Source: Diplonema japonicum | Lineage: Eukaryota; Protista; Euglenozoa: Diplonemea | Length of the DNA stretch: 64,000 nucleotides | Assembly (NCBI GenBank): GCA_964019335.1 | Contig: OZ025716.1 | Span: 124,001 to 188,000, forward strand | Direction of reading: 5' to 3' | Shown: positions 27,452 to 49,385 of the stretch, in pieces | Layout of the letters: each line of letters starts with the position of its first letter | Position numbering within the stretch: the stretch's first letter is position 1 | Notes under the pieces: model-generated | Seen by the model: only the letters and a program-made list of their open reading frames with translations | The model's database searches: none | Told to the model about the DNA's origin: nothing | Program-made: the position numbers and the translations under genes

Positions 27452-28102
27452 ATGGCCGGCGTACCCAGCCGAAAATCGTACAACGATGTTGGCAAGCTGC
27501 CGAGTTACACCACCGCCCTTCCCGGGATCTCGGAGTTGCTTAATAAAATGGTCACGAAAGGGGACGGGAAATCAAGGGGAGGGGAACGGACGGCCTTCGA
27601 TGGGAGCAAGCCCGCACCGGTGTCGATTCAGGATTACTTAATTAGAATGTGCAAGTATGGTTATTGCAGCCCGGAGGTGTTCATTTGCCTTGTTATCTAC
27701 CTGGGTCGTATCCGTGCGAAAATGGGGACGAATTTCACTTCTTACAATATTCATCGGCTCCTCTTAACTGCTTTTGTAGTTGCTGCCAAGTTGAGGGATG
27801 ATACCTACTATTCGAATAAGTACTATGCCTCTATTGGGGGTGTTACGCTGCAGGATATGAATAAGATGGAGCAGAGCTTCCTTAGATATACCTCATGGGA
27901 ATTGCACATCAGAAAATCGGAGTACGACCAGTACTTCGCTGCGATGCACTCCTCTTCAAAGCCTCGCGCCTCGCCGACTTCCTCCCCGTCTTCGAAAACA
28001 GCTCAACTCACCTCCACAACCTCCAGCACCGCCGCCACCACCCCGCAGCAACAACAGCATCAGCAGAGCAAGTTAGCAAAACTTAATCAACCGAATTATT
28101 GA
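27452..28102 (+). CDS. PHO80-like (cyclin U/P) cyclin
   Basis: PVSIQDYLIRM, YNIHRLLLTAFVVAAKLRDDTYYSNKYYASIGGVTLQDMNKMEQSFL. Confidence 0.92.
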   Translation: MAGVPSRKSYNDVGKLPSYTTALPGISELLNKMVTKGDGKSRGGERTAFDGSKPAPVSIQDYLIRMCKYGYCSPEVFICLVIYLGRIRAKMGTNFTSYNIHRLLLTAFVVAAKLRDDTYYSNKYYASIGGVTLQDMNKMEQSFLRYTSWELHIRKSEYDQYFAAMHSSSKPRASPTSSPSSKTAQLTSTTSSTAATTPQQQQHQQSKLAKLNQPNY

Positions 28103-28105
28103 AGT

Positions 28106-28140
<35 letters not shown>

Positions 28141-28595
28141 ATTAGAATTTTTTTTTTCCCCCTCCCGTTTTTTTTTCTTTTTTTTCTCCCCTCCCGTCCA
28201 CCCTTCGTTTTGATGATTTTTTTTTTTTTTTTTTTTTTGGTTAAAACGCTTTTGTTTTTCGGTAACTTTTTTTTTTTGTTTTGGTGAAAAAAAAAAGTGA
28301 CATAAATGAGAACAAGGGGCGCGTCTCATAAAGACCTCCTTAACTCATTTTTTTCTTCTTCTTTTTGTTGTTTTGGTAAAAAATCTTTTTTTTTTTTTTT
28401 TCGCACAAAAAAAAAAAAAAAAAGTTACTGGGAAAAAAAACGTTGTTTTTACCTGCTTTTTTTTTATTATTTTTGAATGAATATATCTTAAATGAGTGAA
28501 TCATCTAACCCATGCATGTCCTTTTCCCCCCTCGTTAAAGTTGCAGAAAACGCGAGTTCTGAGCAGGTCTGTGATGCTCATAAAAAAAAAAAAAA

Positions 28596-28747
28596 AATAA
28601 TAACTATTTATTGCCAACAAATAATGAGTCATAATTTAACTCGAGTTCCCGAATTTTTTGCACGAGGGCCCGCAGGGCCCGAGTGCAAAAAAACGGTAAC
28701 GAGAGTTAAATTATGGCTCATTTGGCGGCAAGTAAGTCGTTTTATTT
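28596..28747 (+). other. Long imperfect hairpin at the element end (GCA triloop, tandem GA mismatches)
   Basis: ...cataatttaactc GA gttcccgaattttttgcac GA gggccc GCA gggccc GA gtgcaaaaaaacggtaac GA gagttaaattatg... Confidence 0.9.
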
Positions 28748-28775
28748 CACTCTTCGTCATTTGAGTCACTCACTC

Positions 28776-29807
28776 TCACTCACTCTCACTGCTTTCACCG
28801 CTGCTTTCCTCACACGGGTCAGCTTTTTTTGGGGGGACAGGCATTTGGTTATTGTTGATATTGATTGTGACGTAGTCGCTAATATTTGAGAAATAAATAG
28901 TTTGACCCGGTTGGACACTGTTGGGGGCGGGCTGTGGCAGTCCAGGCTGTTGTGTGTTGGGAACCAAGGCAGGATTTCCAGGCTGCTGTTGTGAGGGCAG
29001 GCAAGGAATGTTCAGCTGCTGCGACACAGTCCTAATCAGCTTTTTGCTTTTATCGATGTAGCCCTGGGCTACTGAAACCGAGTTCCAGCTAAAAGATTTC
29101 ATCAGCGTGGCTATGTCGGCGCCCCCTTCACAAGCAGCTGTAGCGGCACTCCTCCTCATCGAATGCGAAGTGTACTTCGACGGGCAGCTCTTGCCTAGCA
29201 GGCTGGCCACTACTTTGGTGACGTTCCTCACGGTGTTGATCCCTAACCTGGACGCAACAAACCCCTTACCCGTTCTGTGTATGGGCTGCCCTCCAAAGGA
29301 ACGGTTTCTTGTCGTCAACAGAGGAAAAATAGATGTTGAAAACATCGGCTGCGAGTACTCTAGCTCGTACAGCTCGTCCCCCCTCAACCCCCCGTAATAA
29401 CCACAAACAAACATTGCTCTGTTCACGGTAAAAACGTTGGCCTTCATATGCTCAGGGCATTCGAGGGTGAGCAACGTAGAGAGGTCCTCCATGTTGAATA
29501 CCTCAGCTTTTCTGACAACCCGGGTCGTGGAGGATTCCGACCTCTTCAAAAAGAGTTTGAGCTCTTTCCACTCCTTTTCATCAGCCCCATAAATTGCAAC
29601 GAAGACAGCCCGGATTTGGCTATACAGCGTCCACGCGATGCCACAGCTGTACCCATCAGCAAGTTTCTGCTTAAGATAGGAGATGACATCAGCTTCTTTC
29701 GGCTTCGTATGCTTGGACCAGAAGTTTTCCCATGCTGTTTTGTAAATCTCAGCTGACTTCCTGGGGAGTTTTTCTTCCCAGTTCGAACACTTTTTAACCT
29801 TTGGCAT
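28776..29807 (-). pseudogene. Tyrosine recombinase (CryptonI-like), probably internally deleted
   Basis: LPRKSAEIY, GLRGDEL (catalytic R), YTSHSMRRSAAT (HxxR), WNSVSVAQGYI (catalytic Y). R-to-HxxR spacing is only ~70 aa. Likely start MPKVKK at 29807. Confidence 0.8.
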
Positions 29808-31968
29808 GATTGCGATGCGATTTGTAGTGCTGTTAGGTGGTTTTTTTGCTGAAATTTCCCTAAGGTGATATGGGGGTGGCAATTTCGCTATGGCATTTAA
29901 AGGGGAAGTAAAGCGCTTATTCCCACTTTTAAGGGCTGGAATGGCCTCAGATGGCCAAAAATAGTCAAAATACCCCCACCCCAAAAAAATTTTTCAAGGG
30001 GGTGGGTACATTTTTTTCACGACGAGACCCATTTTTTTCACTCTGAATGGCCATTATTTAACTGCAAAATCTCATTATTTAACTAGTTAAATAATGGCGA
30101 TTTCGCGTTAAATAATGAGGCCCCTAGTGAGTGAAGAAAATGACGAAGAGTGAAATAAAAAAAAAAAAAAAAGGCGGGCAGCCACTCGAGGATGTGTCGA
30201 AAGGCTGAATAGAAAATATGATTTTTTTTCTTTTTTCTTTTTTTTTTTTTCTTAATTATCCGAAGCGGAAGAAAAAAAAGAGAAAAAAAATCTGATGGGA
30301 ATTTTTTTTCCCCCCCCTTTTTTTTTTTTTGGGCTTAAAAGTTGCCTGATCTTTTGGCATCCCGGGGGGATGGGGGGGGGGGGTGAGGAAAGTGGGGGAA
30401 CATTTGATAAATTGGAAGGAACGCGAAATTGGCGTAAACTCGGGAGGAAAGGATGGTGAGTAGCTCACCCTAAGGTATAACTACGACATAAAGAGCTCCC
30501 CTCGTGAAACTAAAAATATTTATTTTTTTTTTTTTGCGTGCGTGTGAGGAACAAAAAAAAATTACCTTCTCCCCCCCGGGGGGGGGGGGGGGGGGAGCGC
30601 AACATTTCTGTACTAGGTCTTTAGTTCAGCATTTCTACCAAGAAATTACGAAAATTCGCCCCCCCCCCCCTCCCCCCCCGTAAGAAGGGAAAGAAAAAAA
30701 AAAAAAAACTAAAAACTAAACTAAGTTATCAGAAGGAGGGGGAAAAAAAAAATGTGGGGGAAGGCAGCGTTCTGCGTTTTTACAAAATAAAATCCTCTAA
30801 AAAATTTTGTAAAAAAAAAAAAAAAAAAAGTTGAGCATTGAACGCCAACACGCGGGGGGGGGTTTGCTGTGCTTGTCACTATTTTTTCTTTCTCCCACCA
30901 CCCCCCCCCTCCCCGCTTTTTTTTCTCTCTTCCCCCCCCCCTTTTTTTCTCTTGTGCAGCTTTATTTTTACCCTTTATTTTCTCTTTTTTTTCTTTTCTC
31001 CCCCCCTTTTTTTGACATATGTGTTCGTCTCAACTTTGAACTTTTAAAGTAGAGGGGAAAGAAAAAAAAAAAAAAAAAAAAAAAAAAGCCATACCTACCC
31101 CCTTCTGAGCATCGGTGCGATTAGCAACAAAAGGGGTTTGTTGACAAGTAATATCTTGCTATTCTTTGTCGCTGTGAAAAAAGGCATTTCTTCGTTCTAG
31201 TTGTAAGGCAAATCTTCTTTGCCAGTTTTTTTTTTTTGCCCCCCCTCTCTTTGGTACTGAAATAGGTATATTTTTCTCCCTTCCCTTATCCCCCCCCCCC
31301 CTTTTTTTTCCCTCCCTACTGCCGCCAAAGTAAAAGTTTGCGATCACGTTTTTGCTTTTTTTTTAAAATTACTGGAAAAAAAAAAAAAGAAAAAAAAAAA
31401 AAGGTCGGCCTGTCAAATCCCAGATGCTGGGGAAAGAAGAAAAAAAAAAATTGTCAGTCCTGCATTCTTTTTTTTTTTATTTTATATTTTACAGTGTTTT
31501 AAAATTTGCATTTACCATCAGGAATTCTTCAGGGGGAGGAAAAAGAGAAAAAAAAAAAAAATACTCTGTGAGTGAGCGAGCAAATACCACCTTTGCAGCA
31601 AAAATACATGGTCTTTCTGTTTTAGTCATGTCCCAAGGAAAAATAGGCCTTGCATACACCCGACTTAATCTTTTTTTCAGATAAGAGAAAACACATACAA
31701 AAAAAAAAAGATGGGGGGGGAAAAACTAGAGATTTACCAAAAAGAAAGAAAAGAGAAAAGAGAAAAAAAAAAGAAGAGGGAAAGAAAAAAAAAATAAAAA
31801 AAATAAAAATAAAAAAGGGAGGGGCACAAAAAAAAATACTATATATTCGCAAAACAAAACTACTACTTTAAGAAAATTTGCAAAATATTTCCGGTCCTAA
31901 TTCTCTTTTGGTTATTGACAGCATAACAGGTTAAAAGAAATTTGGGAAAGAAAATCGGGGAGGGAAAC

Positions 31969-47655: not shown

Positions 47656-47926
47656 ACTCATAAAGCTTAAAAAGCGAAAATTTTGCTTTTTTAAGGGCCA
47701 AGATGGCACTTTAAGGGTAAGTTTTCCCCACCCTGGTTTAATAGTGATTTAGAATCCAGATGCTCAAGCCCTAGACTGCACTGCACACAAAGTGGTACTA
47801 CTTTTCTACTTAGAAATTTAACAGGGGGTTTTTTGTCGCATAGGAGGGTCGTTTGTTGACATTTTTTTCCGGACGAGCTCATATATTTTTTTGTGTGATT
47901 TTATAACTATATGCAACTTGTGCACG

Positions 47927-47954
<28 letters not shown>

Positions 47955-47957
<3 letters not shown>

Positions 47958-48700
47958 TAGCTATTTACTGCCAACAAGTAATGACTTTACCGTTACCTCG
48001 AGGTTCCGCATTTTACCGTCGAGGGCCCGCAGGGCCCGAGATGGTAAAATGCGGAACCGAGAGGTCGGTAAAGCATTACTTGGCGGTAGGTAAGTGGTTT
48101 TATTTCACGACACTCTGAAATTACTTCACCACGAGGGGCACAACAGGGTGACAAGGGGTACAACAAGAGAGGGGTTACAAAGGTTACAATACAAGTTGTT
48201 TTTCCTCCTTTTGTTGACTAAGAGCTGCCGCTGTCGCTGGCATTGCCACTGTCACCATCTCTAATCAGGCCTTCCCATACCTAGCGCGGCCGCTGGCTCC
48301 TTTTTTTCTGCTGCTTCGGTATTTTGAAGTCTTTTGGGGTGCTTGGGTAAGCTGACTAAGTTACCCTTACCCACAGAAGAGTTACCCCCAGAAACTGGGA
48401 AACAAGGCCTAGCCAAAAAGTGGGCAAATTGGGAGGAAAAAGTAGTCCACTTGGAACTGAGCCGAGGCAAAAGTTGGCCAATTGAGCTGAACCTGGGGGG
48501 AAATAGCAAACTGAGAGGAAAAAGTAGCCCCACTGGGAACCGAACCGAGGCAAAAATTGGCCTACCGAGGCATATTATTTAACGGAAACCCCCTATTACT
48601 TCACGGAAAACAGGCCATTATTTCACCGTGAAATAATGAGATTTAGCGTGAAGTAATGGGCCCCCCAGTGCGTGAAGTAATTTCTGAAGAGTGAAATAAA
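47955..48700. mobile_element. Non-autonomous Crypton-like element (hairpin + asymmetric IRs, no YR) nested in a family-A repeat
   Basis: Same gagggcccgcagggcccgag apex, same ttttatttcac / gtgaaataaaa IR ends, ~83-bp internal tandem duplication near 48420-48565. Confidence 0.85.
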
Positions 48701-48748
48701 AAAAAAAAAAAAAAAAAATACTTTTCGCAGCTTTTAAAACCCTTTTTT

Positions 48749-48787
<39 letters not shown>

Positions 48788-49385
48788 CGCGCGAACAACA
48801 AAAAAAAATATAGTCATTAGGAATTTCTTTTTTTTTTTTTTTTTTTGGTAAAGAAATAGCATAAAACCGTGCCGCGTCTGAATCCCTCTAATCAACATAG
48901 GGACGAATGTGTATTGCCAGATAACAAGAAAAAAAAAAAATAGCAAAATTTTAACTTTTAAACCCCCTCTGCCCGGGGTTTATAAAGGCGGGGGGGGTAC
49001 AAGTTGGACCTCTAGTACAAGAAGGGTTACTCCTCTTTTTTTTTTTTACACGCCTTTTTTTTTTTTTTTTTTTTTTTTTTTCTCTTTTGTTAACCAGTGC
49101 AATTCACTCGCCCCCCTATTTCTTTCATATCACGCTGTCTACTTATAAGGCACGGTTACAAGTAGAACACCAAAAAAAAAAAAAAAAAAAAAAAAAAAAG
49201 AAACATTTATTATTGCGCAACCTTCATTTCAATGTCAGAAAACTAAGATTCGATTTTTTCAAAACAGAAAAAAAAAAAAAAAAACGGGTGACCAGAATGT
49301 AAACTAATGAATAGCATGAAATGACGAGGAAAAAAAAAAAAAAGGGAGGGTATTTAAACAGCCCGGGGGGAGTAATTCAATACAA

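Follow-up and report, generated by a model that had tools for sequence, protein, structure and literature searches.

To our knowledge, the recombination of folded single strands by tyrosine recombinases (YRs) is known only from bacteria, namely from integrons and CTX-type phages. When the integron integrase IntI recombines attC with attI, the fold of one DNA strand, and not its sequence, defines the site, positions that deviate from Watson-Crick pairing mark the strand to be used, the stems co-vary, and replication completes the exchange of a single strand. For the attP(+) site of phage CTX, on which XerC and XerD act, two inverted and imperfect sites of one strand pair to create a duplex-like site, and only one strand is exchanged. 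How the YR-only transposons of eukaryotes (Cryptons) move is poorly known. Here we describe elements from a 64,000-nucleotide stretch of the genome of Diplonema japonicum (hereafter called the window; GenBank assembly GCA_964019335.1, contig OZ025716.1, positions 124,001 to 188,000 of the forward strand). The element under study is a DNA transposon of the Crypton type in a broad sense, with a Cre-like tyrosine recombinase as its only encoded protein. One of its ends is a long hairpin that is strand-asymmetric and under selection for structure.

Cryptons are similar to the diplonemid elements in that they are eukaryotic, carry a YR as their only enzyme and lack a reverse transcriptase. Cryptons are presumed to pass through a circular intermediate and to integrate site-specifically (Goodwin et al., 2003; Kojima and Jurka, 2011; PMC3212892), and they are described as lacking terminal inverted repeats and long repeats, with only 4-6-bp direct repeats at their termini (PMC3212892; PMC13465315). 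In contrast to Cryptons as published, the elements described here have an asymmetric pair of 35-nt inverted repeats (IR-L and IR-R), a 143-nt terminal hairpin, a second palindrome and A-tract targets, and they have no clear direct repeat. Eukaryotic YR elements of the DIRS, Ngaro and VIPER groups carry complex, asymmetric repeats whose layout is sensible only once the element is circular or joined (PMC13465315; PMC6681497). However, those elements encode a reverse transcriptase and span several kb, whereas a single open reading frame (ORF) matching Phage_integrase is present here. Our literature search returned no Crypton with hairpin ends and no description of a diplonemid transposon, and the published genome note on D. 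japonicum YPF1604 does not discuss transposons.

An initial annotation of the window, prepared from its letters without database searches, had described a YR ORF between inverted repeats, a long hairpin with G.A mismatch tiers and a GCA apex outside the left repeat, and a second family member in which another 19-nt stem is combined with the same tip, tiers and spacing. Each of these descriptions is upheld by our analysis (Table 1), and the ORF, on the minus strand between IR-L and IR-R, gives a Phage_integrase match. Base pairing in the first hairpin (HP-L) extends to positions 28602 and 28744, yielding a 143-nt quasi-palindrome outside IR-L. The hairpin of the second element is predicted to fold as single-stranded DNA (ssDNA) with an energy of -51.1 kcal/mol (z = -12.3), and none of 200 shuffled sequences folded as well as the two window hairpins. 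Additional copies were collected by means of the apex. In the 62.5-Mb D. japonicum assembly, which includes the window and to which all genome-wide counts refer, the 15-nt tip has 249 exact copies, compared to 1 for a reversed control pattern. The loci read were 60 of these 249 tip-containing copies, a sample that leaves aside distant recombinase loci (C51, C41, C10, C30 and others). All 60 present the same element context, in which the left terminus ATA(A/G)CTATTTA is followed by the hairpin and then by IR-L. The folds, the tip count and this uniform context rule out a chance origin.

In the DNA read here, hairpins of this design occur in five families, which we call A (the first window element), B (the second window element), C (L058, L061, L070 and L041), D (L089 and L060) and E (L076). 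The left terminus given above is kept in families A through E, and in all five the hairpin is followed by an IR-L that starts with TTTTAT, by a palindrome at the right end, by an IR-R particular to the family and by an A-tract. Each hairpin presents four CGAG motifs on one strand, approximately 21 nt apart, which create two tiers of tandem G.A mismatches. The spacing of the motifs is 21/17/21 in A and B, 22/17/20 in C, 20/9/18 in D and 19/25/19 in E. Moreover, in families A, B, C and E a distance of 40-42 nt separates the outer-left CGAG from the left terminus, and in family D a degenerate copy occupies this place. The tiers are about two helical turns apart and are positioned 42 and 63 nt from the crossover point discussed below, corresponding to two and three 21-nt steps. 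The tip is a C(GCA)G triloop in families A through C, GCGAAGC in family D and a different sequence in family E, such that C(GNA)G is found in four of the five families.

The stem sequences of the five families are unrelated, as indicated by arm complementarity that is high within families and at background level between them. Although the recombinases of A and B are only 39% identical, these two families do not differ in the sequence of the tip, of either G.A tier or of the termini. The consensus structure of A and B includes 46 pairs, and RNAalifold reports 7 of these (8 in its pair table) as changed on both sides. When A and B are compared column by column, 10 hairpin pairs are found to be changed on both sides and still paired. 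The co-variation of stems around a preserved tip, tiers and spacing, which had been perceived from the two window elements, is thus seen across five families.

The imperfections in these structures favor one strand. If the strand that carries the A-tract is taken as the top strand, G.A and G.T mismatches on this strand outnumber those of the reverse kind by 59:13 over the hairpins and the IR-L/IR-R pairing, in agreement with the G.A and G.T imperfections that had been pointed out on the plus strand of the window. Among the hairpins of six family representatives, mismatches tolerable on the top strand (G.A, G.T) and on the bottom strand (C.T, C.A) number 47:11. The bias extends to the pairing between IR-L and IR-R (12:2 for the top strand), which had previously escaped attention, and the total is 35:13 for the top strand if the CGAG tiers are excluded. 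In family A, the 35-nt repeats are 91% complementary and carry three purine-purine mismatches on the plus strand (GAG versus AGA), a pattern also present in C. The mismatches are G.A, T.G, G.A and A.G in D1, T.G and A.G in E, and mixed in B. IR-L and IR-R are separated by 250-1450 bp. Therefore, G.A-type mismatches between them are meaningful only if one strand folds on itself. The top-strand hairpin is also predicted to be more stable in every family, by 2.3-5.5 kcal/mol, under a generic energy model in which neither sheared G.A pairs nor GNA loops receive terms of their own.

A fold on one strand might operate at the RNA level, either as a transcript hairpin that feeds small-RNA silencing or as a 3′-end signal of the recombinase mRNA. 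Transcripts of the family do exist (the EukProt transcriptome of D. japonicum includes fragments of the recombinase ORF that are 99% identical), and long hairpins are typical small-RNA precursors. However, the recombinase mRNA corresponds to the bottom strand, where the mismatches become unfavorable C.U and A.C. Furthermore, a GNA triloop with a C-G closing pair is a motif of DNA, not of RNA, and the hairpin is bound to the element terminus and is retained in copies that lack the ORF. We consider an RNA-level function to be very improbable.

Evidence for pairing and for selection also comes from the states of the tiers and loop, which were read in element orientation for the 60 copies. The canonical arrangement GA-GCA-GA is carried by 43 copies. 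The others are GA-GCA-TC (7 copies), GA-TGC-TC (5), TC-TGC-TC (2) and, once each, GA-TGC-GA, TC-GCA-GA and AA-GCA-GA, the last of which (L034) has a deleted left arm. Accordingly, the loop reads GCA in 52 copies and TGC in 8. In L051, the entire inner hairpin is inverted. The multi-base changes at the tip are templated, the result either of copying between the two arms or of an inversion of the loop, and they show that the arms pair in vivo. Converted copies make up 3 of 24 in a young, nearly identical burst and 5 of 5 among old copies, on a tree for which the remainder of the element was used. Perfect pairs have often replaced GA/GA, but every family consensus has GA/GA. In a sample of 24 left ends that were not selected by their tips, 12 have hairpin lesions, of which 10 are confined to a single copy and 2 represent a shared composite deletion. 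Hairpins thus decay after insertion, while in the lineages that multiply they are kept with G.A/G.A intact, and selection therefore acts at the level of transposition.

Flipped tips, and the flipped hairpin of L051, also recall flip/flop isomers, which raises the alternative that the hairpin serves a single-stranded intermediate without being a recombination site. It could be a (self-)priming origin for second-strand synthesis, similar to the minus-strand origins of single-stranded phages and plasmids or to the terminal hairpins of parvoviruses. Such an origin would fit the top-strand bias and the family D tip, since the GCGAAGC mini-hairpin was first noted at phage replication origins. However, flipped tips are a minority (8 of 60) and not approximately half, the element encodes no replication protein, and the phasing of the tiers, at 42 and 63 nt from the crossover point, suggests that they are connected with recombination. 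A priming origin is therefore improbable in our estimation. Hairpin telomeres of the protelomerase type were also considered and were ruled out, as the copies are internal with host DNA on both sides.

The junctions are likewise one-sided. Among the 58 sampled copies that share the family A termini, A is found at positions -5 to -1 in 50-56 of 58 and at positions +1 to +6 in 40-46 of 46. The right end, wherever it was located among the sampled copies, is GAGTGAAATA. Insertions reside in A-tracts in a single orientation, such that the same element strand is always the A strand. There is no target duplication beyond ambiguous A nucleotides, and at most ATA or A is common to both ends. At the left junction, the donor ATAGCT or ATAACT is always retained, and at the right junction the A nucleotides of the target always come next. 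Several independent head-to-tail joins read GTGAAATA|ATAGCT (L035, L044, L052, L017 and L021), and therefore the top-strand crossover is placed directly after GTGAAATA. The type of junction expected from a second, staggered exchange over a mismatched overlap is absent, with the possible exception of L083. From the sequences at hand, these junctions look like those that one crossover on the top strand would give.

We propose that the 143-nt left quasi-palindrome is a structure-selected cis element that would work as a folded hairpin of the top strand, with tandem sheared G.A pairs (5′-CGAG-3′/5′-CGAG-3′ context) in its stem and a C(GNA)G triloop at its tip. The base of the folded hairpin would set the left terminus beside IR-L, in keeping with the adjacency of outer terminus and left repeat that had been pointed out from the window and that we confirm. 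Pairing of IR-L with IR-R would bring the right terminus to the same spot. The recombinase might then confine the exchange to the top strand, with the right crossover at GTGAAATA^A and the left one at A^ATA(A/G)CT, so that a single-stranded circle would be produced, or consumed upon insertion, and replication would complete the process. We give this model, wherein the termini are joined by the hairpin and the IR stem, one strand is exchanged and replication finishes the reaction, close to an even chance of being correct. A folded single-strand route like those of attC and CTX is plausible but unproven.

The enzyme that would carry out this reaction is encoded intact, as an ORF of 378 amino acids, in three copies on contigs C36, C60 and C73 that are mutually 99-100% identical (reference ORF L003:822-1955:-). 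Phage_integrase is the sole Pfam match (PF00589; 36.7 bits compared to a cutoff of 27.1), with E values of 1.9e-7 for the window copy and 4.8e-9 for the intact copy. The catalytic residues R-K-H-R-(H/W)-Y are present in order: in an alignment of 63 homologues, H249, R252, W275 and Y284 show no variation, and R142 and K169 show almost none. An AlphaFold2 model of the intact protein (mean pLDDT 86) predicts a two-domain fold, in which an N-terminal helical core-binding domain precedes the catalytic domain. The YR is the single ORF of at least 150 amino acids in the intact 1.66-kb copy, and no reverse transcriptase/RNase H, HUH nuclease or replication protein is encoded in the element. This single long ORF, whose only match is Phage_integrase, therefore identifies a YR-only DNA transposon. 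A retroelement was ruled out because there is no reverse transcriptase.

Homologues of the recombinase were not recovered by a word-based protein search, but an exhaustive protein search returned 1567 at E<=1e-3, the best being 34-40% identical. One homologue is a coral protein annotated after a Daphnia protein. A metagenome scan with the protein alignment as query yielded no relatives. The closest homologues (P0002-P0007) and the window family both have a Ser-rich N-terminus and, following a low-complexity linker, a C-terminal tail motif Y(Y/F)FSNI..(A/V)TI.I. The two intact-ORF copies with a complete hairpin (L003:642-2315 and L002) carry a GCC rather than a GCA loop, and the third (L004) has lost the right arm of its hairpin.

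Several observations weigh against the folded top-strand model, and some of these are better accommodated by a mechanism that operates on duplex DNA only. In such a mechanism, the element would be excised as a double-stranded circle by recombination of the Cre/lox or Tn916 type, the palindrome would be a dense array of inverted recombinase sites, the four CGAG motifs, all in direct orientation, would confer direction, and hairpins would form accidentally at replication. A Foldseek search of the PDB ranks Cre first (E = 3.6e-12; target-normalised TM-score 0.69-0.73 over ~310 residues that include both domains), with XerH below it and IntI (2a3v) at rank 37, and the NCBIfam integron integrase model gave no match to this protein at E<=0.01. 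The enzyme thus resembles Cre more than IntI, and Cre acts on duplex DNA. The motif TTATTT(A/C)AC recurs approximately ten times per element, including within 21-bp tandem units, of which the right arm of the right-end palindrome (HP-R) contains 1-3 more in non-autonomous copies. By sequence these units appear to be an iteron-like array of a putative recombinase-binding motif, as would be expected for ordinary duplex binding. HP-R has no top-strand bias (-28.0 versus -30.2 kcal/mol for the two strands), and whole-element folds differ between strands by just 1.7 kcal/mol. Likewise, flips and arm-to-arm conversions would be products of template switching in any quasi-palindrome, and Tn916-type integrases tolerate overlaps that do not match and favor A/T tracts.

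However, a duplex-only mechanism leaves three features unexplained: the self-complementarity between the CGAG motifs in five families, the purine-purine and G.T mismatches on one strand, even between repeats 0.25-1.45 kb apart, and the C(GNA)G triloop tips. In addition, the 7-bp overlap AATAGCT would be mismatched with an A-tract at 4 of 7 positions, and the junctions that exchange of both strands should leave were not seen, except perhaps at L083. We judge this mechanism to be rather unlikely.

Further points are adverse to the model. The mismatch counts are not fully independent because families A, B and C share ancestry. With 13% of tips flipped and the canonical state lost in 28% of copies, the asymmetry is not absolute. 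The earlier interpretation, that selection acts on the fold of one strand, is partly supported by the covariation, the strand bias and the GA/GA consensus, with this qualification. Two copies, L080 and L086, have a converted hairpin but are the same as the young burst in all other respects, and therefore a converted hairpin may still transpose. Neither circular nor single-stranded intermediates were seen in contig-level read data, which consist of short contigs; deletion derivatives and hairpin deletions are present among these short Logan contigs of public reads.

Comparison with the bacterial systems reveals both parallels and departures. The strand-biased imperfections and one-sided junctions of the diplonemid elements may be likened to those of attC. 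However, attC sites are 60-140 nt in length and use extrahelical bases as the strand mark, for which tandem G.A pairs are substituted here, and IntI is a bacterial enzyme with a dedicated extra helix, whereas the best fold match in this eukaryotic host is Cre. By analogy with CTX, IR-R plus the left end would pair with the IR-L side, producing a site that surrounds GTGAAATA^ATAAC. CTX depends on host recombinases and a forked hairpin of ~150 nt, in contrast to the dedicated enzyme and regularly spaced G.A tiers seen here. Members of the IS200/IS605 group (IS608) and Helitrons transpose as single strands via subterminal imperfect hairpins, and they insert in fixed orientation beside a short target without duplicating it. 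These elements use HUH (Y1/Y2) nucleases, unlike the tyrosine recombinase of Cre/integrase fold encoded here. A bacterial precedent for one-strand copy-out by the YR class is provided by the SE elements of Vibrio, integrative elements that circularize with a strand bias (PMC9345347). The SE elements, at about 7 kb and with four genes, differ from the small YR-only elements of D. japonicum. We know of no report of comparable hairpin ends in SE elements.

If all parts of the proposed model were correct, this would be the first case in eukaryotes of a mobile element with a YR that recombines folded ssDNA, an independent eukaryotic counterpart of attC and CTX in which a stem of ~110 bp (hairpin plus IR-L/IR-R) has sheared G.A pairs every ~21 nt, one strand is exchanged at an A-tract and replication finishes the reaction. 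We regard this broader claim as possible but doubtful.

The features of the two window elements are collected in Table 1. Two of these go beyond the initial annotation, namely the damage to the ORF and the second palindrome (30052-30117) inside IR-R. Compared to other long copies, the family A ORF in the window has a 97-bp deletion near 29353-29356 that removes the beta-hairpin/Lys region, and a second frameshift compensates for this loss and restores the frame. This copy is therefore probably dead.

Table 1. Positions of element features within the window (position 1 is its first nucleotide)
Feature	Position	Strand	Remarks
Family A element, autonomous type	28600..30157	+	1.56 kb; left terminus ATAACTATTTA, right terminus GAGTGAAATA; A-tract at either flank
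HP-L, left-end hairpin, quasi-palindrome	28611..28731	+	predicted ssDNA fold -41.9 kcal/mol, z = -9.9
Outer-left CGAG	28642..28645	+	tandem G.A/A.G mismatch with 28700-28703
Inner-left CGAG	28663..28666	+	tandem G.A/A.G mismatch with 28680-28683
Hairpin tip GGGCCC-GCA-GGGCCC	28666..28680	+	C(GCA)G triloop on + strand
Inner-right CGAG	28680..28683	+	partner of inner-left CGAG
Outer-right CGAG	28700..28703	+	partner of outer-left CGAG
IR-L, left inverted repeat	28740..28774	+	begins TTTTATTTCAC; inner side of HP-L
YR ORF, damaged copy	28776..29808	-	between IR-L and IR-R
HP-R, right-end palindrome	30030..30142 (core 30052-30117)	.	inverted copies of motif CATTATTTAAC; overlaps inner half of IR-R
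IR-R, right inverted repeat	30126..30160	+	element end GTGAAATA at 30150-30157
Family B element, non-autonomous	47957..48698	+	742 bp
Family B CGAG motifs	47999, 48020, 48037, 48058	+	21/17/21 spacing, like family A
Family B hairpin tip	48023-48037	+	identical to family A tip
Family B IR-L	48098..48142	+	long-range pairing with family B IR-R
Family B IR-R	48657..48701	+	long-range pairing with family B IR-L

The DNA around the family A element (28100-28480 and 30160-31000) contains many long homopolymer runs of A, T, G and C, and the A runs among these intergenic homopolymers are the insertion target of the element. The family B element of the window is inserted in the A tail of a repeat resembling a short interspersed nuclear element (SINE). 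The left flank (47800-47893) is the end of this repeat, which has at least 40 genomic copies, and an inverted paralogue of the repeat end with an uninterrupted A/T run is located at 48745-48820. A paralogous empty site for the family B element was not found in the window. A metagenome scan with the 21-nt hairpin tip gave nothing but GC-rich repeats of bacterial appearance. The exact 21-mer CGAGGGCCCGCAGGGCCCGAG was encountered in 47 metagenome contigs from the Joint Genome Institute (JGI; L104-L150) that appear bacterial, with GC contents of 0.52-0.75 and a few recurring flank contexts. These repeats are unrelated to the element, and may be families of small palindromic repeats of bacteria that have the same G.A/GNA hairpin.

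Genome-wide, family A consists of a few long copies (~1.6 kb, autonomous) and many copies of 530-570 bp, in which an internal deletion has brought positions 1-234 next to 1260-1566. Non-autonomous copies number in the hundreds, a burst of identical ones is present in the genome, and this transposon group has been recently active. The non-autonomous length classes of 529, 550 and 571 bp differ in their number of the 21-bp unit GTTAAATAATGGCSRTTTCGC (L038:1135-1705; window 30085-30117). In family B, the recombinase-bearing copy is L103. A composite in which the join GTGAAATA|ATAGCT links a non-autonomous family A copy and a family B copy that has the same hairpin-core deletion is present at no fewer than three loci (at least L035 on C5, L017 on C40 and L021 on C62) and seems to have been mobilised as a single unit. 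This hairpin-core deletion is also carried by L103. A tandem array with a period of 2516 bp resides at G000:C63:448500-465300, and each of its units contains a family A copy without the first 72 nt.

These elements offer a clear test system, with an enzyme of 378 amino acids, non-autonomous elements of 530-570 bp, sharp junctions, and a hairpin in which the G.A tiers and the GNA triloop are open to mutation one by one. Should the single-strand model fail, Crypton-type elements would still have, in the conserved hairpin, a feature that is clearly under selection and lacks an explanation. If the model is true, then this style of recombination reaches eukaryotes, and the diplonemid elements might furnish a compact, orientation-specific insertion tool.

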